The notes below the pieces were generated by a model. It was not told the DNA's origin and searched no databases. It saw only the letters and a program-made list of their open reading frames with translations. 64,000 nt of DNA from Lytechinus pictus. Its lineage: Eukaryota. Shown here piece by piece: positions 3,596 through 40,826 of this stretch. Location of the stretch: positions 248,001-312,000 of the forward strand of contig NW_026974151.1 in NCBI RefSeq assembly GCF_037042905.1, given 5' to 3'. Every line of letters starts with the position of its first letter. The first letter of the stretch is position 1. The translations under genes were made by a program, and so were the position numbers.

Positions 3596-3663
<68 letters not shown>

Positions 3664-3815
3664 GTTGGCTGCCAAGTTTCATTGAATGGAAGTCAGCTCA
3701 CCCTGATTTCCAATCGAAGAAGTAGTTGCACAGATTAGATTTGGACAATTTTATTGAATTACCAACAAATATTCAAATGCCACATGCTAAATATTTAAAC
3801 CAGTGTTTAATCCTT

Positions 3816-3846
<31 letters not shown>

Positions 3847-16000: not shown

Positions 16001-17440
16001 CAGCAGAGATTTAACAACGGTGAACAAGCCTTTGACGTCATCCTTGTTACGTGCTATCAAGTCTTTGTGATAGGTTTTGTGAGCAGCATTTAAAACATAT
16101 AATGCTGTGTTACGAGTTTTCTTATACTCGTTCAGACATTGATCGGTTCTTGTTCTGTGCCATTTCTTCTCTGCTTTACGTCTCTGCCTTTTTGCTTCTC
16201 GGACCTCGTCTGTATACCATGGCACATGAGGGCGAGTAACTACTCGCTTCATAACCAAGGGAGCATGCTTATCTAAGAGGTTCCTGAGTGTGATATCATA
16301 CAAGTTTGCTAATTCAGAAATATCTTGTGATACATGTAAATTTCTACATAGCATACTATCTGCAAGCTCTTTGTTAAACACTGTAGTGTTAATACGGGAG
16401 TATTTACGATACGACACAATCTTGTCAGTCAAAAATGGTTTACATGTGTTGAGATGGCACATGACTGGAATATGATCTGAAATAAGATATTTACATGGCC
16501 ATGGCTGACCAACAATTACATTGTCAGATTGGCGACAAATAAGGAGGTCAAGCGTGTGACCTTGAGAATGAGTACTAAAATTTACAAACTGAGCACAACA
16601 GAATGATTCAAGAAGATTTTTAAATGACTTTGATTCTGGTGAGTTTACATCAACTTGGATGTTAAAATCACCAGTTATTAAGAGTGGAACATTGGACAGT
16701 AGGTGATCTTGGATGTATTTGTTAAATTGAGAAAGAAACGATGCAACAGACACCGGATGAGACTCTGAATATGGGGCTCTGTACACATTAATCAATTTAA
16801 GATGAAATAATTTGCATACAATATCATACTCGGCAAACTCAAATGATTCCTTCTGACCAGCGGCAACCTGACAAGCATCGATAGGATTTTTGAAGAGAAG
16901 ACCTGTACCCCCGCCACGGCGACCAGTCCTTGGTTGATGGAGAAACCGATATCCAGCGGGAACAAACTCTTGCAGTACTGCAGAGTCGTTCTCAGTCAAC
17001 CAAGTCTCCGTGAGCGTAACTAAATCAGCTTTACTTTCGTTGACAAAGTCATTGATCGCAATTGTTTTGTTACGAACAGAGCGCACATTGATGGATCAAA
17101 GTTGAAGACAGTCTAATTGTGATGAAGTTCTGCTTGATGTTTGCTTTGCATGTTGAAGACTATTCCTTTTCCTTCCTCCTCGAGTTCCCCGCCTGATTTT
17201 CCTGTGCAACGTCTTCTGAATTCCATATGATGTGATTGCTTGGCATACATGATGTGGAAGAGGTGCGACAAAATCTCTCCGTAGACAGAGTTCAGTTGGA
17301 GTGTACTTGAAGACAGCATCGGGATGATCATGAAGACGTCTTGTAGCATGTAGAGTGTCATCGTGTAGCTTGTCTGGGCCGGGGTTAGGCTGGACATCGC
17401 CGGCATGAAGCAGTTCCAACTGAAAGGAGGCATTGCTGCC
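13082..17440 (-). pseudogene. LINE ORF2 (APE endonuclease + reverse transcriptase), frameshifted and interrupted
   Basis: Pieces 17096-17440, 14639-17086 (815 aa), ~14456-14650 and 13082-13315. Frame breaks near 17090 and 14650. GQAPH|HYITELL is split by the 13316-14455 insertion. Confidence 0.88.
13316..14455. mobile_element. Non-autonomous TIR DNA element with ~5-bp TSD (hAT5-like, tentative) inserted in the LINE
   Basis: CAGAGCTGCCAA...TTGGAAGCTCTG. Flanks TAATG/AAATG. Removing it restores LINE protein GQAPHYITELL. Confidence 0.8.
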
Positions 17441-19622
17441 CACTGGGCAATATGTTACCGATTACCAATATTACCGGATATTACCGGTAATAACACCCCA
17501 AAATTTGACTAAGACCAAATATTACCTTTATTACCATGTTATTACCCAAGTGATACTACCTGTTACTGTTATCACCCCCATGAAACCGACATTTTACCTA
17601 TTTACAACAGGGTGATGAGGGGTAATATGGGTAATGTTGAAAGGCTTCGATTGGTAATAACCTTGGAAACTTGAGTTATAACAGTAATATCTTACAGCAA
17701 TCCCAGTGAATTTTTCAAGTCCAAAAAGTTACTGTTATCACCCCGATGAAACCGACATTTTACCGAGTTACAACAGGGTGATGAGGGGTAATATGGGTAA
17801 TGTTGAATGGATTCGATTGGTTATAAAATTGCGAACTTGAGTAATAACAGTAATCTTACAGCAATCCCAGTGAATTTTTCGAGTCCAAAAATTACTGTTA
17901 TCACCCCGATGAAACCGACATTTTACCGAGTTACAACAGGGTGATGAGCGGTAATATGGGTAATGTTCGATTGGTTATAACATTGCGAATTTGAGTAATA
18001 ACAGTAATCTTAAAGCAATCCCAGCGAATTTTTCAAGTCCAAAAAATTACTGTTATCACCCCGATGAAACCGACATTTTCCGAGTTACAACAGGGTGATG
18101 AGGGGTAATATGGGTAATGTTGAATGGTTTCGATTGGTTATAACATTGCGAATTTGAGTAATAACAGTAATCTTACAGCAATCCCAGTGAATTTTTCAAG
18201 TCCAAAAAATTACTGTTATCACCCCGATGAAACCGACATTTTACCGAGTTACAACAGGGTGATGAGGAGTAATATGGATAATGTTGAATAGTTTCAATTG
18301 GTTATAACATTGCGAATTGGAGTAATAACAGTAATCTTACAACAATCCCAGGGAATTTTTCAAGTCCAAAAAATTACCGTTATCACCCCGATGAAACCGA
18401 CATTTTACCGAGTTACAACAGGGTGATGAGGGGTAATATGGGTAATGTTGAATGGCTTCGATTGGTTATAACCTTGGAAACTTGAGTAATAAGAGTAATT
18501 CCAACTATTTTTCTAAAAACTGTTATCACCCTCATGAAACCGACATTTTACCGAGTTACAACAGGGTGATGAGGGGTAATATGGGTAATTGTTGAATGGC
18601 TTCGATTCGGGTATAACATTTGCAAACTTGAGTAATAACAGTAATCCCAACTATTTTTTTTAAAAACTGTTATCACCCTCATGAAACCGACATTTTACCG
18701 AGTTACAACAGGGTGATGAGGGGTAATATGGGTAATGTTGAACGGCTCTGATTGGTTATAACATTGCGAACTTGAGTAATAACAGTAATCTTACAGCAAT
18801 CCCAGTGAATTTTTCGAGTCCAAAAATTACTGTTATCACCCCGATGAAACCGACATTTTACCGAGTTACAACAGGGTGATGAGGGGTAATATGGGTAATG
18901 TTGAATGGTTTCGATTGGTTATAACATTGCGAACTTGAGTAATAACAGATATCTTACAGCAATCCCAGCGAATTTTTCAAGTCCAAAAAATCACTGTTAT
19001 CACCCCGATGAAACCGACATTTTACCGAGTTACAACAGGGTGATGAGGGGATATGGGTAATGTTGAATGGTTTCGATTGGTTATAACATTGCGAACTTGA
19101 GTAATAACAGTAATCTTACAGCAATCCTATAGTGAATTTTTCAAGTCCAAAAAATTACTGTTATCACCCCGATGAAACCGACATTTTACCGAGTTACAAC
19201 AGGGTGATGAGGAATAATATGGGTAATGTTGAATGGTTTCAATTGGTTATAACATTGCGAATTGGAGTAATAACAGTAATCTTACAACAATCCCAGGGAA
19301 TTTTTCAAGTCCAAAAAATTAATGTTATCACCCCGATGAAACCGACATTTTACCGAGTTACAACACGGTGATGAGGGGTAATATGGGTAATGTTGAATGG
19401 CTTCGATTGGTTATAACATTTGCAAACTTGAGTAATAACAGCAATCTTACAGCAATCCCAGCGAATTTTTCAAGTCCAAAAAATTACTGTTATCACCACG
19501 ATGAAACCGACATTTTACCGAGTTACAACAGGGTGATGAGGGGATATGGGTAATGTTGAATGGTTTTGATTGGTTATAACATTGTGAAATTGAGTAATAA
19601 CAGTAATCTTAGAGCAATCCTA
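17441..19622 (+). repeat. 164-bp tandem array, left block (~12-13 monomers plus a unique CACTGGG-initiated 5' end)
   Basis: Monomer GTGAATTTTTCAAGTCCAAAAAATTACTGTTATCACCCCGATGAAACCGACATTTTACCGAGTTACAACAGGGTGATGAGGGGTAATATGGGTAATGTTG...AATCTTACAGCAATCCCA, counted as 164 bp. Confidence 0.95.
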
Positions 19623-19794
19623 CACTCTAAATTACAGGGATTTAAAATTTAAATCTTAAGCCGGATTTGAATGAAATTAAATCGATAAAGATTGATTTTT
19701 AATCTTAAAAGATTGCTAAACTGGTTCTTAATCTGAGTTTCAAATATATTGATTTCAATCCCAAAAGATTAAAAAAAGTTTAGAAAATTAACGG

Positions 19795-19896
19795 CAAATT
19801 GACCAATCACGGTGATAAGATTTTGTCACATGACATGTGACATGCGAGCGCGGGAATATTTTTCGATCTGCGATCTGCTACCGTCGGCGTTTGAAA
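19795..19896 (+). promoter_or_regulatory. Putative promoter/5' leader of element B
   Basis: CCAAT at 19803, a CpG-rich patch in AT-rich DNA, directly upstream of AAAATGG at 19897 (good Kozak context). Confidence 0.45.
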
Positions 19897-22800
19897 ATGG
19901 CTGACATCATGCTGAAGGCGTTTTTAGAGGAAACGCTAGGTCCAAAGGCAGGGGATACAGAGAGATTACTAGAGGGTAAGTACATTTTGTATTATCTAGG
20001 CTATCTGTATTGGAATAACTAATTTTATGACAGCAGAAAGAGTGTTTTCACAAGTAGGGAACAGTCCCGGAACGGTCTAACTTTTGTACCGGTAACTAAC
20101 GCCTGCGATCACGACGCGTCGTGATCAAGCTCAAGCTAGCTGTAATGGTGCTGGTCCCGATCTGCTACCTTAAAAATTTGACTTGAAAAAGAGCAAGAAA
20201 TATGTTTGCATTCATGTAATCATTACTCTCATGCTAAACCTGATATTCTAAAGAGTAAGCATTCCAAAGTCTTATGAAAATTTGAGCAAGAACATTGTTA
20301 TTTTAACAGAAAAGACGCCCGTGTCATTCTAAAATTGCAGGCCAGTTCCGAGACAAGCCACAAGGCACAAGGCCAGGGCGCTGCGCAGTCATAATGGGCA
20401 CTCTTACCGAGTACTATAGTCCTACCATCATACTAGATTCATACATGTAACAGTTACATGTACGCCTTGCTTAGACAGCCGTTAAGTCCAGGGTGAGGTG
20501 GGTGGAACTAAGGCCATGGGATAAAGTATGATGGTTGCCCCTAACTTGTTACTGTTAGCTAGAAAAATGTTTGTATTCCTGTAAATTCTAATGAATAATC
20601 ATGCTAAAATCTCATGAAAATTGGAGCAAGAACACTGCCATCATGCATCGCGTGCGCTGACGTCGCTTCTTTTTAGCTCCGTTTTTTTGCTTATTTTTCC
20701 GTTTTAATTTTGCTAAGTTTTAATTAATTTCTAGTTCAAATGGGTTGCGGACCCTTTTAGAAACTGTAGATTACCACATTTTTATATATTTCACTCGCCA
20801 AAGGTGAAATTCTAGCGCCAAAATATTTTACATTTCTCACACGTATTGTGCCACACCTCAGACGAGGCGCTCGCGCACCACTCCCCACTACTGTCGGGGT
20901 GGCTTTTCCTAGTGGTTTGTGTGTTGATTGGGAGTTTTTCCCAGCGTTGGTTATAACGTAGGCCTATTACGGTCTGGATTTTTATATCGGTTTTCTACAT
21001 TTTTAAGGTGTACATTTATATTATATCGGTCTTCAGTGTGGTGATATTGTTTTTTGGAATTGGAGTGATTTTACTGGATATTTTAGAGTGTTTGTGTATT
21101 GGAATGTCCTTGTAAAGTTGTGGAATTTGTGGTATTTGGGTGTGTCTGGCAAATGTTGGCGGCCATTTTTAAACTTTTAAATCAGCATTCACTCCACGTT
21201 TATCTTGACTTTTTTGCATTGCCTGGCATCTTCATCTGCTCTGCATTCTGTGCATTGCTTGCATATTCTCTATCAACATGAGCTACCTCAAGTCTTCATC
21301 ATGTTCTTTCCTTGTGGCAACCTTCATATGCATTGGTTTACGCCTTTTTTCGACAAGTCCCTCAGTGGTGTTGGATGTTTTGGACAACCAGCTTTTATTG
21401 GACCACTGGACTGCTCCTCTTGCTAGCCATTCTCTCAAGTTCGACTGCTGCCCGGTGAGTCTGTTCCATGTTTCCATTCATAGTAATCAATATCTTGGTA
21501 TGAAATTCGTATTACGACAAGCAAATTTTAAATCTGGCTTGTCTTTGCTATTGATGTTAGCTGGAGATATCAATCCAAATCCTGGACCTGCTTTAGATTC
21601 TGGTCCAAAGGATACTGGCATGAAAAACAAATCAAAATACAAGACTAAATATCCTTGTCAAATATGCAATAAAGCTGCCAAATGGGGCCAAGATTGTATT
21701 CAATGTGATTCTTGTAATGGTTGGTTTCATAAAGTCTGTTTGGGCATGAGTCAGGAGGTTTTTGATGCCCTTGCTAAACATGACTCTTATTCTTGGATTT
21801 GTTGTGACTGTGGAGCACCAAACTTTCATTCTTCCTTATTTATGGATGTGAGTGATATTCAAACTGATAATAGCTTTGAGATACTGAATGATTGTGATCT
21901 TGTATTGTCAAACAACGATTTACATATTGGACAACCTATCCAAACATCTAGTCCTAAATGTAAAAAAGTAAAATTTGAATTAAATGAACAGGTTAAAGCT
22001 AAACCTAAACCTAAACCTAAACCTAAATCTAAACCAAAACCAAAGACTCGTAACCTTAAGATCCTAAATGTGAACTGTCAAAGTGTACGAGCCAAGTTAG
22101 CAGGATTCCAGTGCCTCATTAATGATGAGGATGCTGATATCATTGTGGGAACTGAGTCGTGGCTCCATTCTGGTATTGTCTCTGGTGAAATTTTCCCATC
22201 AAATTACAATGTTTTTCGTAATGATAGAGATAGTGATAGTGATAATCTATCAAAAATCAATTGTAACTGGGGACTTACCCAAAGAGTGGCTTAATGCCAA
22301 TGTCTCCCCTATATTAAAAAAGGGTGACAGGAAACTTCCACAAAATTACAGACCTGTCTCTTTGACTTGTATTTTATGCAAACAACTCGAACACATAATT
22401 TATACTAATATTATGCAACATTTTGATAAACACTCAATACTCTGTGAAAATCAACATGGATTTAGAAGAGGTAGGTCTTGTGAAACTCAATTAGCTGGAT
22501 TAGTAAATGACCTAGCACAGACACTCAATGATCGTGGCCGAACTGATGTCTGTATTATGGACTTCAGTAAGGCGTTCGATACTGTACCGCACAAGAGACT
22601 CTTATTGAAAATCGATAACCTTGGTATTAGAGGGAAAACCAAAGCCTGGATTGATACTTTTCTTACTAATCGAAACCAGAGAGTTATACTGGATGGTCAA
22701 ACCTCCATTGATGCTTTGGTGACCTCTGGGGTCCCGCAGGGCACAGTCCTCGGCCCTCTCCTGTTTCTTGCATATATAAACGATCTACCAGACCAAATTA

Positions 22801-25800
22801 ATGCCAGGGTAAGGATGTTTGCCGACGATGTTATATTGTACAGAAATATTTCCTCAACTGAAGACTGTGATCTTCTTCAAAGTGACATTAACAAATTGTG
22901 TGAATGGCAAAATATCTGGCAAATGCAATTTAACACATCAAAGTGTTTTATTATGCATGTTACACACAAGAAGAAAATCACTCCCTATAAATACCATCTA
23001 GGGAACTCTGAACTGGGCATCGTTGACAGCTATCCTTATCTAGGTGTTCATTTGTCAAATAATTTGTCTTGGACTAATCATATTAATACAACCGTAAACA
23101 AAGCAAACAGTATACTTGGATTGTTGAAACGTAATCTATGGAATTGTTCAACTCAAACTAAAGATATCGCCTACAAGACTCTTGTGCGGCCTAGGCTGGA
23201 ATATTGTTGCTCTGTGTGGGATCCCCACCAGAAAAATCTTCAAGATAAACTTGAAAAAACTCAAAGAAGAGCAGCACGATTTGTATCTAACAAATATCAA
23301 CGCACAAGTAGTGTTACTGAAATGATGAGTATTCTAAAATGGGATACTCTCCAAGACAGGAGAACAAGTAGCCGGCTCATATTTTTGTTTAAAGAAATAC
23401 ACAATATAACTCCATGTAATATAAATCAAATCACTTCAAAAGCATCCTCCAGGCCAACAACTAGAATAACCAGACAGTCTCATGACTTAAACTTCAATAT
23501 AATCAGAGCAAATAAGGATTGCTACAAATATTCCCTCTACCCTCGTACAATTGTAGAGTGGAATTTACTTTCTCCCACCACTAAAAATGCACCTGATCTA
23601 GCTGCATTTAAGAAACAGCTAAGCAAAAACATGTTAAAGCTAACTAAAAGAAGTATATAGCGGCAGCGATTGCATGAATGGCCTGCACGTTTATAGCCTC
23701 TTGAGGCGTTCAAGTGCAGTATTTACAAGACAAGACAAGACAAGTTAGAATTGTTATTTTAACAAGAATTAAAAGACGGCCATGACCTGTGTTGTTTTAA
23801 CATTAAAGAGTGGATTAGTGCCCATGTCTGCGAACTCGCGTAACTGCGCAATTCAAATAGGTCTAGGTTTAGATCTAGACCTAGCTCTAGAACAATTAAA
23901 ACATCACATTCACATGCAATATCAATTTTTAGTCTATCTAGATCTAGTCTACAAAGACTATTTGATGCAAAAATGACGCAAAAATATTGAGAAAAGTCCT
24001 GATATCATTTGAGCAGTTTAATTTGCAAGCCCTGAACTGCATGTAAAATGATATTTAGAATCTAGACTATTGCATGTTTTGTTGTAGACTAGATAGGTCT
24101 AGGTCTACTCTTACATTAGACTCTCTAGATCTAACGCAGGTACGCATCTTCGCAGACATGGGCGCTGTGCATTAATGGGCACTCCTGCCAAACATTCCTG
24201 TAATGATTATGAATTATCAAATATTGAAGGAGTTACGGAAAGCTACGCACTTCTCGCCGCGACTCGTGTCATAAATTGTAATATTTCAGATCTTCTGGAC
24301 CCAGTCCTACTCCTAGATCTAGGTCTAGACTCTAGTCTGGAGTGCCCGTGATTTGACTAAAAATTATAATTTCACACACAAGAACACTAAATTATATAAC
24401 ACACAGGAATCAAAACATTGCTCACACACAAAAAGTCACTGACCACATCCAAATTCAGTATTAAAACTCCCAAAATATATTTAAAAAGCTGATTTTCATT
24501 ATCAAAATTGCGATTTCGGCTCAATATTTTCAAAGGTCTTAAAAATGGGGTCACTTAAAACCAGCTATAATTTTGTTGTTTGTTGCAAGCCACGAAGGTG
24601 ATGGTATGGCTGGAAAAAAAAATCAAACGAACACCCGAGACTCTCCAAATGCGATCATTGTCCTAATCAAAGCATTGTTGTAGTTTATAAACACACGTGC
24701 TTAATAATATATTGTATGCACAGGGAAAATTAATTATTTCCTTCTGAGAAAAATGGAAATTTATGGAATATTTTGTACACAAAATGAGAGCTGCTCGCAT
24801 GTGACATCACAGAGTTGCCAGTTTGCGTTTGATCGATTGCAACTTTTAAAAATCATAATTTTTTTTTATCCTTCATCGATTTCTTGTCAAACCTTCACTG
24901 ATCTATTTTTCTCATTTTTCTGCTTTTGTTAAAACCAACTTGATATCAGGGTCGACTTCCCCTTTAAAAGAGTTATCACAGAATTATTTAGAATTTTGAA
25001 AATAAATCTATATTTTCAATATATTTTTGTTTCAGAGAACTTTGGCAACACTTCCCAAAGGAGACACACATTCTGTCATAATCGCTTCACTTTGATAGTC
25101 CCGTCCCATTTGTGATACGGATCAGATTCTGGACCCAAAAATACGCATTTGGCGTTTTAGAATTACATTGCATTACAGTATTCAGGAAATGTGATGTTTG
25201 AATTAGATCATGGAATTGTTATGCTTGAAATGTGGAAGACTTATTCATGCTGATACAGTGAGAGAGTATGCTCGTCATTTACGTATGTCCCATGCCGTCT
25301 TTGGGAATGGAGAGACACTTGTTTGTGGTCAAAATGGTTGTATGCGAACATTCACCCTCATGAACTCACTGTTACGCCACATACGTCGACACCATGCCCA
25401 CATGCCAGTTGCACATAATGACCCTTTACATGGTGACTTTGTTCATGAAGAGGATGATGATGAAGGAGAGGATGACCAAGCAAACTATGATGAGGATGTA
25501 GAAGATGCTGAACATGTTTATGAACCGGAAGATTTCAATCTAGGTTCATTGAAGAAGCTGGCTATGAATTTGGTCATAAAATTAAGGTCTTCAACATCAA
25601 CCACATACTCTACCATTCAAAGTGTCATCACTTGTACGAAAAACATGTTTCAAGAAACACTTTCATCTCTACGGCAAAGAATGATAACTGTAATGCAACA
25701 TCATGGAATCGACACCAACTCACCTGATGTACAGGAGCTTAATCATCAATTTCAAGAGCTTGAAAATCCTTATATGGGTATTGAAACACCAGGTCAGCAG

Positions 25801-28800
25801 ATGAAATACATGATTGAAAACTTAATGTTGGTTCCTCCAGTTGAGCGGGCATTGGGAACAAGAATTGATCACAAGTTGGACAGAAAAACTGGCCAAACAA
25901 ACCAAGTAGTTGTCACAGAGACATTCCAGTACCTCCCTATGCTAGAAGTTCTCAAACTTGTACTGAAACCAGATGTAAGAGCCCTCATTGACTCAGAAAT
26001 TAAATCACCAGAAGGCATCTTAAGGGGATATATGGATGGCACACAATATCATCAGCATGAAGTGTTGCATAATCACCCACATGCTCTTAGAATTGTACTC
26101 TACTATGACGATGTGGAAGTCGTTAACCCTCTAGGGAGCAAAAAGGGCCTCCACAAATTGGGCCTGTTTTATTACAGCATTCAAAATTTCCCACCATGTT
26201 ACAATTCCACTATGAACAGTATATTTCTTCTAGCAGTATGTTATAGCTCAGACGTGAAGAAATATGGCTTCAATGCTATTTTGCGACCATTTCTTGATGA
26301 AATGAAAAGACTTGAAAGTGAAAATGGCGTAGAGATCCTCATTAATGATAACATGATAGAGGTTCATGGTACTTTGGTCTCATTTGTTGGGGACTCACTT
26401 GCAGCACATGATATTTTGGGTTTTCTAAGCCCATCAGCAAGAAAGCTGTGCAGGTTGTGCAAAGCGACTCGAGAAGAAGCCCAAACTAAGTTTTCAGAAG
26501 AGGACTTTCAACTGCGTGAAATGGATGAACATGATGAAATAGCTCAGCGTGCTGCCAACAGGGGACGTGGTGATCCAGATAGTGGCATAAGAAATGAATG
26601 CCCATTGAATAGGTTGAGTTCTTTCCACTGTGTGAATAATTTTAACTTTGATGTTATGCATGACCTACTTGAGGGAGTGTGTCAGTATGAGATTAAACTC
26701 ATACTTAACCAACTTCTCTTTGTTGATCACTTCTTAACATTGGGTGAACTTAATCACCGCTTATCATCTTTTCATTATGCTTTCAACGATAAGAAAAACA
26801 AGCCAACTTGCCTTTCAATGGAACGAATAAGGAATGCACAAGACCACAAATTGGGTGAAAAGGCCTCCCAAATGTGGTGTCTAACTAGGATGTTGCCTCT
26901 GCTGATTGGGGATCTTATTCCTCAGGACAACATGCACTATGAACTACTACTGTTGCTGTTACAGTGCTTGGATATAAGTTATTCACCAGTAGTTTCTATA
27001 CCTCAGACTGTAATACTGAAATACCTGATTTGCGATCATCACAGTCATTTCAAGCTCGTTTTTCCTGAAAGCCGAATGATAAACAAGCACCATCACATGG
27101 TGCACTACCCGATGTGCATGAGAATGTGTGGACCACTAGTACTTTCACAATGTCTACGGTTTGAAATTAAGCACAATTTCGGCAAGAGATTGGCTGCAAT
27201 TAATTGTAATTTCAAAAACATTTGCAAAAGCATCGCTGCCAAGCACCAGGTGATTCAGTGTGCTGTTTGGATGGGAAAAGGTCTAAGAGAAGATTTTGAA
27301 GGCATTAATGGAAGTGTTGTTACAGTTTCATCATTGGAAGGAAGTCAGTGTATCATTGAAAGCCTTCACCTTCATGAGGACACTGAAATCTTTTCAGCCA
27401 GTAAAGTTACAGTGTATGGAATCGAGTACATTCCTAACCTCTACTTGGCAACAGCCATTGATGATGATGAACCACAGTTTAGTCGAATAGTGGTTATTTT
27501 GGTCCCAGGGACAACAGCAGGAGACATCAAATTTGTTGTTAGAAAGTGTTGGAATAGAGGGTTTTTCCGCCATTTCCATGCCTTCTGTGTCCAAGAAATG
27601 GAGATGTTTGAGTACAGTTTGGTGACGCTTGATGACCTTATTGATCATGTGCCTTTGACTGCATTATCATCCTACGAGAACAACAGTTCAAGAGTGTACC
27701 TGTGCCCTCGACATAGTCTAATACAACATAGGTACATATGAATTCAATGATGTGATTATACATGTATGCTCCTGCCCCATTAATGAATTTTGAGTTTTGT
27801 ATTAATATAACTTTTTAGGGGGGGGCCTCGCAAACCAAAGTTGGCATGCACACGAAAATGTGCACAAAGAGAACATTAGACCTCATCTATGAAAAAAAAA
27901 ATAAAAAAGGCTTTTGGACATTTTCAAGTTGTTCATGTCTATGAATTTCTTACATGTACATGTATAGTTCATCATCTAGATCAATTTTCAGTTTGAATAA
28001 ATTATAAATCAAGAGGGAGACCTGACTGGCTTACAACCAAACTTTACATGTATATCTCACTTAATTAGCTTTTTCTTTCATACACAAAATAATCAAAATA
28101 AATTCATATTTTTGTTCGGGTTGGTCTTTGGTCATGAACGATCACATGCATAATTGCATGTACTTCTATCAAATGATGTCTGATTTTAAAAATGTAGTGT
28201 TCAAAGAAAATAAAAACTTTAAAGAAAAGGGTGAAATTGCACCGCTGAAAACGTGGAGGATTACTCATCAAAATTTGCCTATTGCCCCCCCCCCCTCCCC
28301 TGCACATTTTTGGTTAATACATGTACATAAAATATGTACATTGTACATGTATAGTATTTCCTAAATTTCACTTGTGCATCTTTCCTTTTTCCCCGTATAG
28401 AGAATGATGTTGACCTAGAGGTTCTACGCACAATGTCAGAGGGGGATCTTGAGAAACTCGGAATATCGTTTGGGTTGAGACGAAAATTGACTCTGGCAAT
28501 TAGTAAGTCACAAAAACAACTGGAGAGTACCACTGATGGAGTCGTTATGCATGTAAGTATTTTCTTTTGTAGTCCGATTATGTACTTTAAATAAATGTAT
28601 GTCGGAATATGAAATGCTATAAATGAAGAATGTGTTATTTTTTTGTAAAGATGGATGATTTAGATTAGCTTCAGTTGCCTTTAATGCTGTCATGTATTGA
28701 TGTCAAGTGCGGTTGTGTAAAGGTTGAGCTAGAAGTTGGTTAAATTTTGATTGTCTTTATTGCATTATACTACATGTAGGTGTAAAAAAAAATTAAAAAT

Positions 28801-31800
28801 TGACACTTATGATATCTAATAACTCAAAAGTGAACTGTTATCAAGCTCAAATTTTTTTGTTTTTTTGTCTTGGTTTCTCAACAAGTGAAAAACTCATATA
28901 ATATTCCAACATCATTTTATCAAGTTTTATTTGAAGGAATGTCATGAATGAATGTCAATCCATAGTAATTTTTTTTTTCTGTGATTAATTTGTATTTGTA
29001 TTTTTTTTTAATTTTTTATTTTTTCATTTTTACCCATAGGATGTTCCAGCAACTTCTGATAGCCCAGTTCCCAAAAAATTGAAAAGTGTAATGGTAAGCT
29101 GTATTCCCTAATGCTATTTACAAGATTTAGTTATGTCTTCAAATTTGAAATAAAACAATGAAAAAATTAACTCGGTATGATGGTGAAAATTTCCTTGTTT
29201 AAATTTATTGGTACCCATTCCAGGTCAGTTATCCCAATTTGAAAACACTCATTTGTTTGGTACAAAAGAAAAATCGAAATAGTTTTCAACTGAATTAAAG
29301 TTTTTGGCATTTTAACATAAATAGAATGGAACTAAAACTGCTTGAGCTAAATGTACTTTGATATTAGCTAATAAGACCATATTTTATCCCTAAATGTACT
29401 GAAATAAGTTTGTTTCTTTTTTGGCCATGAATAATGCCACTTGAAAAAATATAATGGAATGCTTACATGATGTTTTAAATTTGTACAGTATCTGTAATAT
29501 GATAAAATCATACTTTTAGTTCAGATAATAATTGTCAATATATCATCAATGAATTAACACACGGCGTTACTTTTACAGAATCTCAAAGAAGCAATGAATA
29601 ATTCATCTGAAGGACGAGAGCTAGTGAAGCATCTTGATGGTGGTTCTACATTGTCTACCAAGCAAAGGAAGGCACTAGTGAAGATGGCTGTTGGACATCT
29701 TGTGGACCTACATGGCTTGTAAGTAGTGAACACTCGATGTAAATTACACATAAACTGCCCATGAAAACTACATTGAATGAATTTCCTTACTGTTGTTAAT
29801 ACTTTTTACATGCAGCTTTATATACGACCTCAAAGGTAAAAAGGCTAGGCTATTTTGGTGAACTCTCAGTGGGGGGAGGGGGAATCTTTGCCTTGGATTG
29901 ACCACAACTGGTCATGTAGAAAAAGCATCCAATAATGAATAAGCCTGTTAAAGTTCATACCCTTATCTCAAATGGTTTTTGAACAAATTATAGGCTAATT
30001 TGGGCCACTCATAGCATGGTACCTGATGGTCAAGACTTCCTAAATTTATATCAAAATATGTGTATTACTCTAAGCGCTAAAGTCATGAAAATGAGATAGA
30101 GATGTTTGGAAAAGTTTGTTTTGCAAATTTTCGAAATTCCAGACCACAAGACTGTCCATGTCAAACTCATCTTACTACCATATGTCCATAAACAGTCAAT
30201 GGCTGCTTGTATAATTTTTCTTTTTTCTTTCTTTTAAACATTCATGAAGGTGGCCACCAACTAAACAGAAGACCTTGTTGGCTAAAGAGATAGTTAGTAC
30301 ATGGCCTTCAACCAAAGATACCACACCTGGAATGGAAGGGCATGTAAGTAAACATTGAATGTTAACATATAGAAAAAATTGAAATGGTGACATACATGTT
30401 CATGTGCATGCTTGTACTTAGTTCATATGGTTTAATGAAATATGTATTAAGAGAACAATGTGCCAAATATTTTTTGTTATATAGATGATTTTATATTGTA
30501 AATATTAAAAAAAAAATACACAAACTATGAATTTTAGTAGGCTTCATGGGAGTATTTCTTCAAGAATTTTTAGTGTAACTCCAGTTAGATCGAATGCACT
30601 ATCTGGATATGAATGAAAAACAAGTCAGAGAAAATCTTGGAGCCAGGAGGGATTCGAACCTGCAACATCTGCTATCCGGGCAGCGACTACACCACCAGGC
30701 CATCTCTGGTCCATGGAATAGACACGATGAATTAGAATCAAATATCCTGAGTCTCTTAATTCTGATTTATTAATATCCATGGTCCCCAGTAGGACAATAT
30801 GAATCCTACTAACATTCATAACCTATTGTCCTACTGGGGACCCTGAATATTAATAAGTCAAAATTAAGAGATTCAGAGATATTTGATTCTAATTCATCGT
30901 GTTTATTCCACAAACCAGAGATGGCCTGGTGGTATAGTCGCTGCCCAGATAGCAGATTCAAATCCCTCCTGGTTCTTCTTAAAAAACACAAAATATGTAA
31001 TTGAATCTCTAAACATTCAAACTCATCATTTAAGTTAAAAATACCAGGATTTCTGTATGTGACGTTCTTATCAGGTGAACACTCTGCAATATGCCCTATG
31101 TACAGTAACCAGCATTGGATGCTCTTGTGATTCACTTGTAAAGACCCTAGGTTTATTTCTTCCATGTGGGTGTGACCTTCTTTTAGTGATTTTTTAATCT
31201 AAAATGCTATGAGTCAGACAGAACACATGAGCAGAATAAGCAAAATTCACTTACAAATTTGAATTTATTACTGTTGTTCATGAATGATATCTGTTTAGCT
31301 AACTATACAGGTATTTATTCTCAAACAAAAAAACAAAAAAATGTATTTTTAAAAATTAATTTTGGTGTGTTGCTATTACATCCTAATACTGGAAGTTCTT
31401 TTTTTTTTTCTTCTTCTTCTTCAATGAAGGAACATTTCTTCTCACATGATGGGTCTGGATTCATCCAGTACAGACTAAAAAATGTGAGAACATCTCAAAA
31501 TGAAAGAATGAAGACTCCAAAAAAGAAGTCTGAGAAAGAAATGAATGAAACCTCAGCAGATGAAGCAGATGAAGCAGCCACTGATGCATTCCAACAGCAG
31601 GATATCCAGCAAAAGGTAATGGATAACTAAAAGATGTATGTGATGTTTCATGAGAATTGTATCAGAGATACTTGTGGATCATGTTTATCAAGAGATGGGT
31701 GTTAAATTGGTTTAAGAAGTCTATAAGAAGAGTAATCATTTTTGTGTATTTGGTTTTGAACCTGTAAGTATGGGAAGCCACTAAAACAGCATACTTCCTC

Positions 31801-34800
31801 TTATACCCTCTCTCCTTTCTTTCTTCCCCTCCTTCTCATTGTTTTTCACTTTTGCATGTGCTTACTGCCATGTTTCCATTCCGTTCATCATCTCCTTATA
31901 GAGCACTTTACAAGTTATAAGTAACTGACCAAAAATCTTGCTGTGTATTACCCTGGTCATTGGATTCAATCTCGATTCTGCATTAACAGTTCAGGGTTCA
32001 GTTTGTCTGCCATTCTCCCTTTATTTGTGTCTGTCTGCATTGTAGGTGAGTGTGTCATTTGAAATGTGGACTATTTGTGGTTGAGGCTGTCATTTTTCAA
32101 AGAGGGTCCCAAATATGGGGATTAACCTGGACAATGATTTTATGATCTCAGGATATGCACATTTCCTGACCATCTTACAGATTACTGACATTGATTTAGG
32201 AATTACATGCACTTTATGAGGAAAAAGCATTTTATGGTTTCTTTTCATTGTTTTATAACCCTTCTAGGAGCATGTCACATTTTCATTTGCAGTATCTTAT
32301 TCTTGTTTCAGATTGATTGGATGAAGTTTTCACCACCTCATCGTGGAAATATGTCTATGCACATGGAGTATTTCGAGGACACGCACAAGTACAGACGGCA
32401 CATCATTATGGATAGTGGTAATCCTATCACTATTACAGAAGTGTTGACTTTGTTTCCGAGATATCAAGACATTCCACAGTTGGTAAGTTATTTGTGTTAT
32501 GAAATTATCATGTCATTACTCTCACATCATTGATACTTTTGAATTTCTTTTATTTTTTAGAGGTGGTCAGGAAAGAAATTTGGGCTAAATTGTATCCCCC
32601 GAACAGAGTTTTTAGTGTGGGTGGGGTCATCGTTGCCATGGTAACATTTTTTGTGGAAATATTTTATAACCTGTAACTTTTGCTGTTTTTTGCCCAACTG
32701 TCATGATATTTGGTAAACAGGACCGATATAACATGGAGTTGTCAAAAATGGAATTTTCAGAAGTGCCACGCCAAAGCGTTACCATGGCAACCACACATTT
32801 TCTTGTGAGCGCTCTACCGGCTGCAGTTCTTCTCGGATTATCTTCAAATTTGGCGTGAAGGTGCATTATGATAAAGGGAAGACACCTATCAATTTTGGTG
32901 TGGTGGTAGGACAGTTTTGGGGATACATGTGCTTGGACGGGTACCCCGAGTGCTCTAGTTAATTTGCAAATTTAGAACCAAAATATTATTACCCAAATCA
33001 TCGGGAGCAATAGAAATATAATTGTGATGACTACTGCGCCTTATAATTTGAAAGTGTCTGCACTTTTGGGGCAATTATGCTTTCATTACATCTATGTGTA
33101 TAGATTAAATCTGTGGGTGATGAAGTGATAATAAAATACTGGCTTGAGTTACTCTTAAGGGATATGGAATATATTGCCCTTGAAATGATATTGTACTTGC
33201 CTTCTCTTGATTGTAGCTCTGTCAAAAATGTCTGATATCCCCCTAAAGTCCATCCAATATTATGTAAGTATTTTAATTGTTTTTGATAAAATTATTTTGT
33301 CATCCATTTGCATTGTTTCCCCAGATTGGAATAGATTTCTCCATGATGCACAAAGCTGAATCGGAAAAGTTCATTACCCAATGGTCAACCTTGAGAGAGA
33401 AAATCATACTCCTGGGCCAGAAAGAATATCATAGCGTCAAGCAAGTGATAGAGCGTTACCAGGATACGGACAGTAGGTTCATGATTTTACTTCATTTCTT
33501 GAATTTGAATCAACTCATGGTTTTAAGACCTCATGCATCGTTGAACTTATCATAGGTCCCTGGAAGTTCTTGGAAATATTTTCAAAAGTTTTATTTTCAG
33601 AATTTATTCATTCCAGAGTAAATAGTAATTCATGCACAGTAATGTTGTATTTTTCACTGAATTTATCCTTCATAATTTTATTGTGAGCGCAAAGCGCGAG
33701 CCGAAAATTTTAGAGCTCCCAAAGGAAGCAAATTATGCATCATAATGAACCTGAATACCAAATTGATGATCGACAAAGGTATTGATTTACATTTTACATG
33801 TTTAATGAAATGTTTTTTGGTATAAAAACACGGAAAAAGAGCATGAAATTTTGTCATGGAAATTTTTTTTTTTTTTTTTTTTGGGGGGGGGGCTGCAGCC
33901 CCCCCCCCCCACTCAAGCTCCCCCACCGGTACGCCAGTGGCAGCATGGATTTTTTTTTTCTATTCAAATGGTGACATGTGATCAATAGATCACCTTGTTA
34001 AATTCTCCTAAGGTATAAAGGTCTTAAAAATATTCTACTTTATTCATTTTTATTTATTCATGTTTCAGGAGATCTTTGTGCACTTCTGGTTGTTCTCTAT
34101 GTGCTCCATCGGCCTGTGACAAAATCGAAGGTCAACTGTAGCAGGTCTGCTGCAGTGCAGTACCTGATACAGCATGTGCCAGTGAGTAATTGTTGGTTTC
34201 CTTTCGATTCTGAAAATTTTGCACTACTACATTATTAGACATGGTTCTTGGATATATGATCTACATGTAGATGATTATGTCATACATATCTTAGCCTCTC
34301 TCATAGTAATAGCCACACTAAGGTCAAGAGTCATTTGTGAGTTGTGATAAGGTAAATTTACCTTTTTGTGGGTCTTGGTAACTGTCCCTTTGTGCTATAC
34401 ATGTAACTATACAATCATTATTGTAGACTGAAATGCCACCCACACTAAAATACACACACCCTGAAAAAAAAATCCTCTTTCAAAATGCTGATATCTTTGA
34501 ATTAAAGGTAATCTTGAGTATTGGTAATGTAAAAAAATATTGTCCCACAGAATCACAAGAAATTTACACTGAATGTTCGGAACTATAAATAAATGACAAC
34601 TGCCAAGTTATTTTGAAAGAAAATGTATAACAGCTGAGTAATGAGCAAATGAAGACAATTTTGACGTCCCGTCAAAATGAGCTTGCCTCGCTCAGCTATG
34701 CAGCGACCACGTGCAAAGCATATGTGGACATATGTGGACATATTTAACCACTTTCATTCCGATTTATTTTTCATTACCACAACTCAAGATTATCTTTAAG

Positions 34801-35178
34801 CAGGATGCAGGATAATGTTGTCATTAACATCTACATATATATGTTTTCAAATTCTAATTACAGCAAGGAACAAACATGGAGGAAGCTATAAACAAGATCA
34901 AGAAGGAATACAGGCAGCCCCTCATAGTAGCCCTCGGAAAGGAGACTGGACAGAAGCAGTACTTCTTGTGCCTGGACAGCATTCCTGTGAGCGCCGGGGC
35001 AACAATAGTGGAAGCTTTTGACAAGTTATTCAAATGTTTTTTCATCTTTGGCGTTACCTATCCTGACATTCTCTCCCATTTCTACGATTATTTTGCGGCG
35101 TTTGTCTACGAAATTTGGCCAACGCAGAGGGTTAAGCCTACTGTGCGTTCATTTGCATGTGCCATTAAGTCCTCTTAA
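19897..35178 (+). CDS. SAM-domain accessory protein of transposon B (SAMD3-like), 10 exons, 483 aa
   Basis: Exons 19897-19975, 28401-28552, 29040-29093, 29579-29718, 30250-30343, 31430-31615, 32312-32482, 33325-33472, 34069-34181, 34864-35178. All GT-AG, 1452 nt in total, one open frame. SAM signature LEENDVDLEVLRTMSEGDLEKLGISFGLRRKL spans exons 1-2. Confidence 0.88.
20632..23744 (+). mobile_element. LINE (CR1-group/RTE-X-like) with internal deletion, inserted in intron 1 of element B
   Basis: PHD finger (CQICNKAAKWGQDCIQCDSCNGWFHKVC...WICCDC), start of APE (NVNCQSV, GTESWL), RT (DFSKAFD, GVPQGTVLGP, FADD), 3' tail (ACAAG)4. The 5' boundary is approximate: it interrupts a GAGCAAGAA..TTGTTATTTTAACA intron repeat also seen at 20284. 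Confidence 0.88.
21278..23660 (+). pseudogene. LINE ORF (PHD-APE-RT) with most of the endonuclease deleted
   Basis: ORF 21278-22294 stops matching APE after YNVFRNDR. The sequence jumps near 22240 to pre-RT IIYQKSIVTGDLPKEW in another frame (ORF 22122-23660). Confidence 0.85.
25210..27741 (+). CDS. EnSpm/CMC-type DDE transposase, 843 aa, intronless, apparently intact
   Basis: Two N-terminal C2H2 fingers (CLKC..HLRMSH; CGQNGC..HIRRHH), YYDDVEVVNPLG, VGDSLAAHDILGF, CRLC, DVMHDLLEG, KHHHMVHYP, CLRFEIKH. Lies between matching CACTC TIRs. Confidence 0.92.
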   Translation: MELLCLKCGRLIHADTVREYARHLRMSHAVFGNGETLVCGQNGCMRTFTLMNSLLRHIRRHHAHMPVAHNDPLHGDFVHEEDDDEGEDDQANYDEDVEDAEHVYEPEDFNLGSLKKLAMNLVIKLRSSTSTTYSTIQSVITCTKNMFQETLSSLRQRMITVMQHHGIDTNSPDVQELNHQFQELENPYMGIETPGQQMKYMIENLMLVPPVERALGTRIDHKLDRKTGQTNQVVVTETFQYLPMLEVLKLVLKPDVRALIDSEIKSPEGILRGYMDGTQYHQHEVLHNHPHALRIVLYYDDVEVVNPLGSKKGLHKLGLFYYSIQNFPPCYNSTMNSIFLLAVCYSSDVKKYGFNAILRPFLDEMKRLESENGVEILINDNMIEVHGTLVSFVGDSLAAHDILGFLSPSARKLCRLCKATREEAQTKFSEEDFQLREMDEHDEIAQRAANRGRGDPDSGIRNECPLNRLSSFHCVNNFNFDVMHDLLEGVCQYEIKLILNQLLFVDHFLTLGELNHRLSSFHYAFNDKKNKPTCLSMERIRNAQDHKLGEKASQMWCLTRMLPLLIGDLIPQDNMHYELLLLLLQCLDISYSPVVSIPQTVILKYLICDHHSHFKLVFPESRMINKHHHMVHYPMCMRMCGPLVLSQCLRFEIKHNFGKRLAAINCNFKNICKSIAAKHQVIQCAVWMGKGLREDFEGINGSVVTVSSLEGSQCIIESLHLHEDTEIFSASKVTVYGIEYIPNLYLATAIDDDEPQFSRIVVILVPGTTAGDIKFVVRKCWNRGFFRHFHAFCVQEMEMFEYSLVTLDDLIDHVPLTALSSYENNSSRVYLCPRHSLIQHRYI
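30639..30976. repeat. Palindromic element with tRNA-like (A/B box) outer ends
   Basis: Arms ~30639-30800 and ~30825-30976. The left arm on - reads ACCAGAGATGGCCTGGTGGTGTAGTC...GCAGGTTCGAATCCCTCCTGGCTCC. The right arm is the same sequence with a short deletion before the B box. Confidence 0.75.
32575..32960. repeat. Dispersed repeat with GTTGCCATGGTAAC / TTTTGGTGTGGG motifs
   Basis: Related copies at ~49100-49490 and ~62570-63010 (AATTGTATCCCCCGAA, GCTCTACCGGCTGCAGTTCTTCT). Confidence 0.7.
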
Positions 35179-38800: not shown

Positions 38801-40826
38801 CAATATGAATTGAGGTATATGCAAATAATTTAGTTTTTGTTGAGCCACCGAGGTGGATCGAAACTAAGGGATCCTTGGCGGCGTCCGTCCGTCCGTTATT
38901 TGGGGATCAAAGGTCAAATGAGGTCTTGAATAACTGCAACCATTTTTTTTCTCTCTCTCTATTCATACAAGTAAGCTATTCTTGGTATTTCACTATTAAT
39001 CAGAATCAATTTACTAGAATGATTGCGAGACACATGGCTATTGCCTTGTTCTGTTTCCAAAACCGAAAAAAGAAAACCTAGAATATTGATTTTAAAAGAT
39101 TGTCTGTATTGTGAATAACAGTAGAAAAATTGTTGTTGGTAACTTGTTAACTATGCTTGAAATTGTCAGGAATACAAGTTGAAAACAGGAAATTGGAAAA
39201 CAAACCATTATTTTGGGTATAATAACTTTTTTTCTCAGTGTGCATTGTCGCAGTCATTGTTATTAAATCTTATGACCACAATATGAGCATGGTCTTATTT
39301 AATTCACCGATCTCAGGCAGGGTAGGTTCAACTGCCTAATTCCCTTCCAGTGTACAGTCTGTGCAAAGTGGGTTTTCAACATAGCCTATACATGTACGTG
39401 ATGGTCAGTTATAACAGCCTATAAACGTTCTTGATGGTCAGTGATAAAAGCAACCAACAAAAATGTATAAGTGTGCTTAATTTTCTAGTTTGCAGAAGCG
39501 TTATTCTGTATGTGGATGTTTAATTCTCTATTTTGCAAAAAAAGAAAAAGAAAGAAGAATATTCCAATACATGTATGGGTCACTTTCGACAGAGGTCAAA
39601 AGGTCATTGAACTTTCCATGAAAAGCATTGCTGCTTTAAAATGCTTTAAAATGTTAAAGTGTTCCGTCTTTTTGCAGTGTTGTATTAGAAATGGTAACTG
39701 TTTTGCCTCTGTATACTTATTCGTAATATTTCTGCCAATGTATACTAGTAAATCTAAACATGTGTCTGGTTACTTCTTTAGGTCTCTATTTACCATGATA
39801 TTTCATGTATATACATTGTACAATTTTTCAAGCTATTCATCTCTTTAAAGCTCAATTCAAGTTTTGGGAAACAGAATTTTTTTTTTTGTATTTTGCTTCC
39901 ATTTTACAATAATATGGAAGATTTTCTCAATAAACCCCAGTGAACAAAAGGATTTGCCACCAAATATATTCTAAGACTGAATTTGATCAGCAATAGCACT
40001 GAGAAATCATTTCGATCTGGGCCAGTGCCTTTTACTACTTAGCGCTGACCACACGCAAAACAAATGATCGAGCTGCATGCCCGCTATTTGCACCGGACCG
40101 CAGTGATTTGCCTTGCCCACAGCACTGGCTGAATAGCTTACCAATAGTAGCCTCGGTTTCATCAAACCCATCAGATATTAACACTAAATTCGTTGGCAAT
40201 CATGCATAGACCATAACAATATTTGGCACAGGTATATTTATATATAAATGGAATAATATGAGGACATATATGATAGAATTAGAAACTAGAATTGAGCTTT
40301 AACCCTTATCTGACTTGGGGAGGAGGGTCATTTTGACCCCCCCCCCCCCGTACAAAATCCACGACTGTCGTAATGTCTCGCATTTTTTAAGACCAAGTTT
40401 GCCAAAGATATGTTGTGCAAATTGTGTATTTTTCATTTATAAACGTTTTGTTATGTATATTTTTGAGCTTCAATGATATTAATAAATCAAACTTACCAAA
40501 CTTTGATTTTGGAGTGTTCAGTATTCAATTTCATTGCTTCAGCATATCTAGAATGGAGATACTTTGATTTAAATCTCTATGAGGATTTTAAAAAAAGAAG
40601 TCCCGAAAAGGATTGTTTTTCAATCTTTATCAGGGTTAATTTTAATCTAGAAAGATTTATAATTTAAATCTTTTGAACTTATTTTTTAATCCTTTACAGA
40701 TTAAAACTTTTTAATCCTAGCGAAGAGTAATTATCAATCCACATCGATTGGTCCCTACCTACAGTACATGAAAGATTTAAAAATAAATCCTATAGATTTA
40801 AATTTAAATCCCTGTAATTTAGAGTG

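Follow-up and report, generated by a model that had tools for sequence, protein, structure and literature searches.

The first intron of a multi-exon gene for a SAM-domain accessory protein, carried by element B, a 21.2-kb CACTA/EnSpm-type DNA transposon of Lytechinus pictus, harbors a transposase open reading frame (ORF) in the same orientation, placed between exons 1 and 2, and the question which this locus raises is how such an intronic ORF is brought onto a translatable message. The first-pass annotation had proposed that one promoter serves both genes, that splicing of a common first exon to alternative acceptors yields mutually exclusive products, and that exon 1 acts as an upstream ORF (uORF) on the transposase message. 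The element was analyzed within a window of 64,000 nt (assembly GCF_037042905.1, contig NW_026974151.1, forward strand, positions 248,001 to 312,000), and all coordinates and counts of that annotation were re-derived from the sequence.

Architecture of element B and its two genes

Element B is located within a satellite, its terminal inverted repeats (TIRs) lying at 19623 and 40826 and being bordered by a TA duplication (Table 1); removal of the element together with one TA restores a gapless satellite unit, which is 96 to 98% identical to other units. The TIRs start with CACTCTAAATTACAGGG, which is of the CACT- type, and their arms show 94% complementarity across 32 nt, while a 24-nt TIR core is exact at both ends of the element and occurs twice in the window, where no occurrence is expected. 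The motifs AAGATT/AATCTT are found six times in the terminal 260 nt of the 5′ end and four times in that of the other end, compared to an expectation of approximately 0.2 to 0.3. Based on the CACT- TIRs, the 2-bp target-site duplication, and the subterminal motifs, element B is assigned to the CACTA/EnSpm (CMC) type, as predicted from sequence features; a duplication of 2 bp is a Mirage-like value, that of plant CACTA elements being 3 bp. A long interspersed element (LINE), nested in the sense orientation, occupies part of the interval between exon 1 and the acceptor at 25036, and an Rfam scan of positions 19600 to 29000 returned no match.

Table 1. Coordinates of features of element B within the window
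Feature	Position	Strand	Evidence
TA target-site duplication, 2 bp	left 19621..19622, right 40827-40828	.	Empty-site rebuild
Left terminal inverted repeat, CACTCTAAATTACAGGGATTTAAA...	19623..19652	+	Inverted repeat I8
5′ subterminal region with AAGATT/AATCTT motifs, CCAAT box (about 19806), and leader	19653..19896	+	Motif count
Exon 1: ATG 19897-19899 in strong context (AAAATGG), first half of SAM domain	19897..19975	+	Sequence; sister version in RNA
Nested non-LTR retrotransposon (LINE) in intron 1: PHD-finger ORF, RT ORF, (ACAAG)n tail	21278..23747	sense (+)	PF00628 and PF00078 matches; sequence
Short core, highly repeated in transcriptome assemblies; contigs break there	24894..24968	.	Contig depth
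Pyrimidine tract and AG of alternative acceptor	25019..25035	+	12/17 pyrimidines, C at -3; junction used in X25 contig
Start of transposase-mRNA exon, with 3′ half of 52-codon uORF; TGA 25113-25115	25036..25115	+	Sequence, joining contig
Two more upstream starts	25189..25253	+	Sequence
Intact 843-aa transposase ORF, N-terminal C2H2-like finger, CACTA/EnSpm type	25210..27741	+	Homologues, alignment
Donor-like AG/GTACAT, 8 nt ahead of transposase stop codon	27730..27737	+	Sequence only
Exon 2: second half of SAM domain, phase-1 acceptor, donor CAT/GTAAGT	28401..28552	+	SAM_1 match
Further accessory exons	29579..35172	+	tblastn with C-terminal parts of Holothuria models P0007, P0020, P0026
Right terminal inverted repeat	40797..40826	-	Inverted-repeat pairing, core count

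The 79 nt of exon 1 comprise 26 codons and one further nucleotide and run up to 19975, at the donor GAGG/GTAAGT, for which the two acceptors named in the first-pass annotation, at 25036 and 28401, were both found to be correctly placed. The downstream acceptor, ccccgtatag/AGAAT, opens an exon at 28401, and exon 1 joined to 28401-28552 translates as MADIMLKAFLEETLGPKAGDTERLLEENDVDLEVLRTMSEGDLEKLGISFGLRRKL... When exon 2 was scanned alone, its product aligned with the Pfam SAM_1 profile (64 positions) from position 29 to 62, at E 0.003. Because exon 2 codes for the latter half of a SAM domain, the first half must come from upstream, and it is the reconstituted domain that points to a 19975>28401 junction, which would complete the SAM domain as had been claimed. 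Further downstream, approximate accessory blocks were placed by tblastn at 29579-29719, 30251-30346, 31436-31534, 32309-32488, 33325-33489, and 34864-35172; the Holothuria gene models used, in which transposase and SAM exons are fused, were judged to be ab initio fusions and served solely for this placement.

The transposase has 183 homologues, including full-length proteins from sea cucumbers, a brachiopod, insects, fishes, and corals, and aligns end to end with its relatives at 27 to 58% identity. The 843-aa protein itself gave no Pfam match at E 0.1 or better, and an exact look-up in public assemblies found no record of it; among 14 aligned sequences (the element B ORF and 13 relatives), four match PF02992 (tnp2/Transposase_21; best E 4.9e-7) and one matches Plavaka. 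Joining the donor-like site close to the transposase stop codon to 28401 would be predicted to close the frame after two codons. Relatives with about 45 to 57% identity, namely, contigs L001 to L003 and L005 to L007 and the genomic locus L004, were inspected for a SAM exon-1-like peptide in the 80 to 650 nt upstream of the transposase ATG, and none was present. That these sequences are spliced transcripts carrying SAM exon 1 directly upstream was rejected; they appear to be unspliced or genomic, and are therefore uninformative with regard to conservation of the acceptor or the uORF.

RNA contigs across the acceptor at 25036

The upstream acceptor, tatatttttgtttcag/AGAAC, opens an exon at 25036, the transposase ATG following 174 nt later. 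When pyrimidine tracts were counted crudely, no other acceptor in 24300-25210 reached its quality, and the 8.4-kb intron as a whole contained 11 such sites, this one included, so that its position alone would be weak evidence; the likeness of the two acceptors (AG/AGAA) was dropped as evidence, as it extends over only 4 to 5 nt and is not significant. What is decisive for regarding this acceptor as more than chance is that an RNA contig joins exon-1-like sequence exactly there. Contigs (Logan) of four runs, X1, X5, X6, and X25, whose type was guessed ("RNA?"), were compared over one 6-kb stretch; genomic DNA of L. pictus was ruled out as their source, since no run covers 19980-23780, the LINE included. 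In X25, an 84-nt contig is composed of 29 nt matching 19946-19974 at 25 of 29 positions, followed by a G and then by 25036-25089. The segment 19946-19974 is the best match in the window for these 29 nt, the next best reaching 20 of 29. Just one such joining contig was present, at a depth of 2.46 and in X25 alone among the four runs, and the listed contigs fully account for the X25 depth in 24980-25179, with none over 24980-25034.

The joined exon 1 is a variant of that of element B, with two synonymous and two conservative changes, and the 52-codon frame and its stop are intact in this expressed variant. It derives from a sister copy which differs from element B by about 1.7% in the leader and the ORF, and at 4 of 29 positions in exon 1; no long RNA contig with at least 99% identity to the window was present among the contigs of the four runs. 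In RNA of a sister copy, rather than of element B itself, the acceptor at 25036 is, therefore, used together with the exon-1 donor, and the search for a 19975>25036 junction in RNA, which the first-pass annotation had suggested, was successful to that extent. A contig of X5, from a sister copy, spans 19783-19843 and continues farther upstream. Over 570 nt, the transposase ORF of the sister copy shows six synonymous and three replacement differences from that of element B, as expected of a functional gene, and both this ORF and exon 1 are under purifying selection between copies.

It may be argued that such splicing is noise in a decaying copy, the 4-kb sense LINE in intron 1 having crippled or silenced element B, the sister-copy junction being cryptic and without a selected role, and the uORF having arisen by chance where a phase-1 exon runs into non-coding sequence. 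The lack of long contigs matching element B would fit this explanation, as would the ten other acceptor-like sites of equal quality in the intron, a leader (3 to 5 differences in 174 nt) which is conserved no better than the ORF, and the fact that a phase-1 splice into any non-coding sequence soon encounters a stop. However, 25036 is the only good acceptor within 900 nt upstream of the ATG, which is where the Spm paradigm predicts one, the signature of purifying selection on the transposase ORF and exon 1 is at odds with decay, and an intronic ORF requires some path to a translatable mRNA; we, therefore, regard splicing noise as unlikely.

The ORF-carrying contigs of X1, X6, and X5 show no splice at 25036 and extend upstream as far as 24938, 24954, and 24932, respectively, the unspliced reach upstream of the acceptor in these runs being at least 100 to 440 nt, and X5 additionally covers 24597-24923. 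Alongside the spliced form, there are transposase RNAs which are unspliced or start internally. The depth of X5 is 7.5 to 8.7 upstream of the acceptor compared to 17 on the ORF, a step which, like the contig break at 25044-25073, is indicative of a second input close to the acceptor. Because the contigs of X1, X5, and X6 continue upstream of 25036, the proposal of one promoter with mutually exclusive products is upheld insofar as the splice at 25036 exists, both the single promoter and the mutual exclusivity being presumed. For a poly(A) site anticipated at 27900-28000, the 3430-nt contig of X1 gives no support, as it would reach about 28370 if collinear with the window. Two loose contig ends inside the ORF, at 25412 and 25450, were considered as splice sites and rejected, having no AG before them; they are instead attributed to diverged copies of the family in the acidic region.

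As the X1, X6, and X5 contigs run upstream either unbroken or with a depth roughly half that of the ORF, a large part of the transposase RNA may bypass the acceptor. Taken to its full extent, this would mean that transposase is produced mainly from such RNAs, originating either at an intronic promoter (24500-24950, perhaps the repeated core listed in Table 1) or as intron-retaining pre-mRNA, with the exon 1>25036 splice being minor and the uORF having little weight in control, a scenario which we consider possible but doubtful. It draws on the 3430-nt X1 contig (depth 73.7) and a 2890-nt X6 contig, both of which begin just upstream of the acceptor and cross it, on the X5 contigs 24597-24923 and 24932-25073, of which the end at 24597 carries no loose letters, and on a CGCATGTGACAT motif at about 24795, which resembles, inverted, the sequence immediately upstream of exon 1; contigs of relatives likewise contain 340 to 620 nt of unspliced upstream sequence. 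The spliced form is nevertheless present in X25, where coverage just upstream of 25036 is absent, and continuity in X1 and X6 is no proof that it is missing there, since short low-depth branches are dropped in Logan contigs. Moreover, the contig starts at 24932-24954 fall within the repeated core, where assemblies break, and are thus not transcription starts: its summed depth reaches about 2300, with many contigs diverging on both sides, although the window itself holds no second copy. The unspliced leader would, in addition, also contain many upstream AUGs.

A proposed splice choice and uORF-limited transposase message

The explanation which we favor, and hold to be moderately probable, is that of an element B transcription unit in which a splice choice is combined with a uORF-limited transposase message. 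One main transcription unit would start near the element's 5′ end, with the SAM-domain accessory protein taking its start codon and initial 26 codons from exon 1. Splicing of exon 1 to 28401 would complete the SAM domain and produce the multi-exon accessory mRNA, while splicing to the strong acceptor at 25036 would produce a message bearing the transposase ORF; the choice between the two would set which protein a given transcript can yield. A promoter shared by both messages is presumed here, and element B itself, despite the LINE in its intron, would still be spliced in this manner.

The leader of the transposase message has the composition that the first-pass annotation described. Exon 1 joined to 25036 forms a 52-codon frame which terminates at TGA 25113-25115, 94 nt before the ATG at 25210. 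The further ATGs expected near 25188-25196 were found at 25189, where ATG-TGA (25189-25194) constitutes a one-codon frame, and at 25194, from which a 19-codon, out-of-frame ORF (25194-25253) overlaps the transposase ATG. The spliced leader contains four upstream AUGs in all, the first in an A-3/G+4 context. On such a message, the first AUG, given its strong context, would open the 52-codon uORF, with two more upstream AUGs following, and the transposase ORF would be accessible only via re-initiation or leaky scanning, so that its output should stay low. Throttling of transposase by re-initiation is conjectural.

A stronger version holds that exon 1 has a selected dual use, one AUG starting either the SAM protein or a regulatory uORF, that transposase production is thereby tied to both splice choice and re-initiation capacity, with bursts whenever conditions, such as stress or particular germline or embryonic stages, allow the downstream uAUGs to be bypassed, in the manner of GCN4/ATF4, and that this arrangement is conserved in the animal SAM-gene CACTA family; we judge this version unlikely.

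Parallels with Spm and other regulated systems

In maize Spm, translation of tnpA begins in exon 2, exon 1 thus being a non-coding leader, and the tnpD mRNA extends into the accessory exons. Spm represents one transcription unit which is alternatively spliced, the intron-1 ORF being included only in the rare tnpD mRNA (PMC1636069, PMC2613891). Spm/En and element B share CACT-type termini and subterminal repeat motifs, and in both a multi-exon accessory gene holds in its first intron, in the same orientation, a transposase ORF, of the tnp2/Transposase_21 type in Spm/En and putatively so in element B (PMC1636069, PMC2613891). A further resemblance is the common first exon, for which exon 2 and an acceptor preceding the transposase ORF are alternative partners, the exon-2 junction of element B being a predicted one. 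Element B differs in that its exon 1 encodes the accessory AUG and 26 codons, from which a uORF of 52 codons arises when the transposase message is spliced, in that its accessory protein has a SAM domain and is unrelated to TNPA, and in its TA (2-bp) rather than 3-bp duplication and its animal host. By analogy, element B appears to follow the tnpA/tnpD logic of maize Spm in an animal, with a coding first exon turned into a uORF.

Long uORFs render re-initiation inefficient in known systems, and the uORF of element B is, at 52 codons, long. With GCN4/ATF4, the transposase message shares, in layout only, a strong-start uORF which ends some 90 nt ahead of the main AUG, as well as an overlapping uORF farther downstream. 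Among animal elements, SmTRC1 of Schistosoma mansoni, a member of the CACTA superfamily, has an ORF of the Transposase_21 type, and alternative splicing gives it several transcripts, of which shorter, abundant ones lack the transposase domain (PMC1636069). At 4.5 kb, SmTRC1 has neither a SAM-domain gene nor a described uORF arrangement, unlike element B. The searchable literature yielded no account of an animal CACTA/EnSpm element with a SAM-domain gene and the transposase in its first intron, nor of a uORF that arises from a coding first exon. To our knowledge, animal CACTA/EnSpm elements are poorly studied.

The predicted exon 1>25036 junction has been verified with independent RNA data, while the one-promoter picture is a presumption. 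If the splice switch and the uORF set transposase dosage, the abundant-accessory/scarce-transposase strategy of Spm/En would be common to plants and animals, and a translational layer would be added to its one-promoter strategy. The arrangement would then also provide a handle on the self-limitation of a large, apparently young DNA transposon in a deuterostome genetic model.

Architecture of element B and its SAM accessory gene

Element B, a 21.2-kb transposon with TA on either side, splits one unit of a 164-bp satellite at a TA, and its ends and 2-bp TA duplication are secure, because the satellite unit left after removal in silico of the element plus one TA is gapless and 96 to 98% identical to its neighbours. 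The satellite can also be read at periods of 328 and 493 bp (matches of 86 to 90%), and the G+C content of the window, 32 to 45%, is that of AT-rich animal DNA. AAGATT/AATCTT motifs occur six and four times in the terminal 260 nt of the two ends, versus an expectation of approximately 0.2 to 0.3.

Features of element B and its insertion site
Feature	Position	Strand	Remarks
Satellite, 164 bp, insertion target	17563-19620 and 40830-45000+		flanks element B on both sides
Left TIR, 30 nt	19623-19652		begins CACTCTAAATTACAGGG
Accessory exon 1	19897-19975	+	26 codons + 1 nt; ATG context AAAATGG; donor GAGG|GTAAGT
Intron 1	19976-28400	+	holds the LINE and the 843-aa ORF
Non-LTR retrotransposon (LINE)	21278-23747	+ (sense)	(ACAAG)n tail; downstream of exon 1, upstream of the 25036 acceptor
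Transposase, intact 843-aa ORF	25210-27741	+	within intron 1
Accessory exon 2	28401-28552	+	acceptor ccccgtatag|AG; donor CAT|GTAAGT
Six more accessory coding blocks	29579-35172	+	match C-terminal parts of sea-cucumber gene models
Right TIR, 30 nt	40797-40826		begins CACTCTAAATTACAGGG

A total of 183 homologues of the 843-aa ORF, a large number at full length, come from sea cucumbers, a brachiopod, insects, fishes and corals; a Pfam scan of the ORF returned no match of its own. Because 4 of the 14 sequences in an alignment of this ORF and 13 relatives match Transposase_21/tnp2, and one matches Plavaka, element B is placed in the CACTA/EnSpm (CMC) superfamily, its putative transposase domain being indicated through these homologues only. 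The ORFs of 513 and 211 aa at 51920-54252 (+), the former with a weak match to Transposase_21 (E 0.01) and, near a DxMH...GV motif, no more than a faint resemblance to the transposase of element B, represent a distant CACTA relative ("element C" of the first-pass annotation). Six tblastn blocks at 2638-9048 (+), which match the C-terminal body of the Holothuria transposase-plus-accessory gene model P0027, probably mark an accessory gene belonging to another, related element ("element A").

Exon 2 by itself aligns only to positions 29 to 62 of the 64-position SAM_1 profile; the first half of the domain must, therefore, come from an upstream exon of approximately 26 to 28 residues. Exon 1 joined to exon 2 gives a SAM domain reading, and a 19975>28401 junction is predicted.

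The LINE nested in intron 1 carries a PHD-finger ORF and a reverse transcriptase (RT) ORF (21278-23660), the latter in a different, overlapping frame; approximately 4 kb of sense LINE separates exon 1 from the 25036 acceptor in element B, with a possible adverse effect on the expression of this copy. Two inverted repeats inside element B, both assigned to the part downstream of the accessory exons, are probably nested MITE-like insertions: a near-perfect one of 238 nt with a 6-nt spacer (35921-36402) and one of 80+53 nt (30667-30957). Just outside element B, beside the satellite, an 815-aa ORF (14639-17086, minus strand) with endonuclease and RT domains (PF03372, PF00078) is a second LINE.

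Splicing of exon 1 to 25036 in RNA of a sister copy

The first-pass annotation had proposed that the exon 1 donor is joined either to exon 2 or to an alternative acceptor at 25036 (tatatttttgtttcag|AGAAC), the latter creating an upstream ORF (uORF) ahead of the transposase; its coordinates and counts hold throughout. Re-derivation gave a frame of 52 codons that closes at the TGA at 25113-25115, 94 nt before the transposase ATG at 25210, and the further upstream ATGs anticipated near 25188-25196 proved to be two, namely, that at 25189, which is immediately followed by TGA, and that at 25194, which opens a 19-codon out-of-frame ORF overlapping the transposase start. By a crude pyrimidine-tract count, no other acceptor within 900 nt upstream of the ATG matches that at 25036 in quality, and intron 1, 8.4 kb long, has 11 such sites including this one; the position of 25036 alone is weak evidence. 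Upstream of this acceptor, GCTCGCATGTGACAT (24788-24812) resembles inverted ACATGTGACATGCGAGC (19836-19853), located just 5′ of exon 1, a likeness which may reflect a common regulatory or binding motif, or chance.

In public sequencing runs, approximately 0.5 to 0.58 of the words sampled from 24950-27800 are present, the corresponding fraction for 19760-20060 being 0.21. Contigs from four of the runs (X1, X5, X6 and X25, presumed to be RNA) were aligned to 19780-25779; coverage of 19980-23780, LINE included, is absent in all four, which rules out genomic DNA of L. pictus as their source.

In X25, an 84-nt contig (depth, 2.46) places its last 55 nt on 25035-25089, while its first 29 nt, AGGCAGGGGAGACAGAGCGAATATTAGAG, match the end of exon 1 (19946-19974) at 25 of 29 positions, the next best site in the whole window reaching 20 of 29. 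Because the G aligned at 25035 is the final G of exon 1, the two parts meet precisely at GAGG|AGAAC. X25 coverage begins at the 25036 acceptor: no X25 contig lies over 24980-25034, and the listed pieces explain all depth in 24980-25179 (964/200 = 4.82). The predicted junction is thus in use, as seen in a sister copy and in one of the four runs. Since the four exon 1 differences comprise two synonymous changes, D>E and L>I, the contig is taken to derive from a functional exon 1 of that copy. The uORF frame and stop are likewise intact in the expressed variants, in which 25083 C>T replaces R with C and the changes at 25090 and 25109 affect one residue each. Splicing noise in a decaying family is regarded as quite improbable.

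Unspliced RNA and the expressed locus

All long contigs carry one common set of deviations from the window, 14 over 842 nt, which identifies the expressed locus as a sister copy or divergent allele, as opposed to element B as found in the window; in the ORF, over its opening 570 nt, these contigs have six synonymous and three replacement changes. The 3,430-nt contig of X1 (depth, 73.7), starting at 24938, and the 2,890-nt contig of X6, starting at 24954, both pass the 25036 acceptor unspliced. X5 provides contigs over 24597-24923 (depth, 8.7) and 24932-25073 (7.5) and an ORF contig from 25044 (17); the halving of depth on the upstream side may point to an additional input close to the acceptor, though the break falls at 25044 and not at 25035. 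RNA that retains at least 100 to 440 nt upstream of 25036, therefore, coexists with the spliced form; candidates for it are pre-mRNA, a message that keeps the intron and a transcript from a promoter within the intron.

That transposase RNA is mostly unspliced or internally started is a rival reading which these contigs would suit, and which we consider unlikely, if appreciably less so than splicing noise. The contig starts at 24938, 24954 and 24932 are not transcription starts, because they fall in an assembly-breaking core of approximately 75 nt (24894-24968), where summed contig depth reaches approximately 2,300 and numerous contigs branch off on either side. The core matches nothing in Rfam and occurs only once in the window; it may be a repeat or a part common to non-autonomous derivatives. 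As assembled contigs lose short rare branches, a ratio of spliced to unspliced RNA is not obtainable from them.

The earlier interpretation is upheld in part: the X25 junction speaks for use of the 25036 acceptor, and, given the unspliced contigs of X1, X5 and X6, one promoter with mutually exclusive products stays a proposal. If collinear with the window, the contigs of X1 and X6 would reach to about 28370 and 27840, respectively, and the former does not fit the poly(A) site expected at 27900-28000. An X5 contig of sister-copy RNA over 19783-19843 (depth 40.7, above that of the ORF contig) extends approximately 190 nt further upstream, and transcription may for this reason start very near or outside the element end.

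The inspected relatives of the transposase (45 to 57% identity) comprise six assembly contigs (L001-L003 and L005-L007) and one genomic locus (L004). SAM exon 2 lies downstream of the transposase in L001, L003 and L004, the three in which it is detectable, and no exon-1-like peptide was found in the 80 to 650 nt upstream of the transposase ATG in any of the seven. These sequences appear to be unspliced and, hence, uninformative on conservation of the acceptor or uORF.

A proposed transcription unit resembling Spm/En

On balance, we favour an Spm/En-like transcription unit, in which a common first exon would be spliced to exon 2 to specify the accessory protein, or to 25036 to form the transposase message. 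The maize Spm/En element is a single, alternatively spliced transcription unit whose intron 1 ORF enters only the rare tnpD mRNA (PMC1636069, PMC2613891), and the animal CACTA element SmTRC1 also yields several spliced forms (PMC1636069). The layout proposed for element B would work in the same way; a donor-like AG|GTACAT (27730-27741 region), 8 nt ahead of the transposase stop and overlapping the last codons, would, if joined to 28401, close the frame two codons on, the message continuing into the accessory exons as in tnpD of Spm. Element B differs from Spm in its coding exon 1, and hence its uORF, in its SAM-domain accessory product, in its 2-bp duplication and in its animal host. A literature search returned nothing relevant on EnSpm with a SAM domain, SAMD3 with a transposon, or a transposase with a uORF. 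The present analysis adds confirmation of the predicted 25036 junction, its uORF consequence and the coexisting unspliced RNA.

Because exon 1 is coding, the transposase message would open with a strong AUG and the 52-codon uORF, followed by the ATG-stop and the overlapping uORF. Under eukaryotic scanning, a leader of this kind would be expected to let very few ribosomes initiate at 25210, and a uORF of 52 codons is rather long for re-initiation to be efficient.
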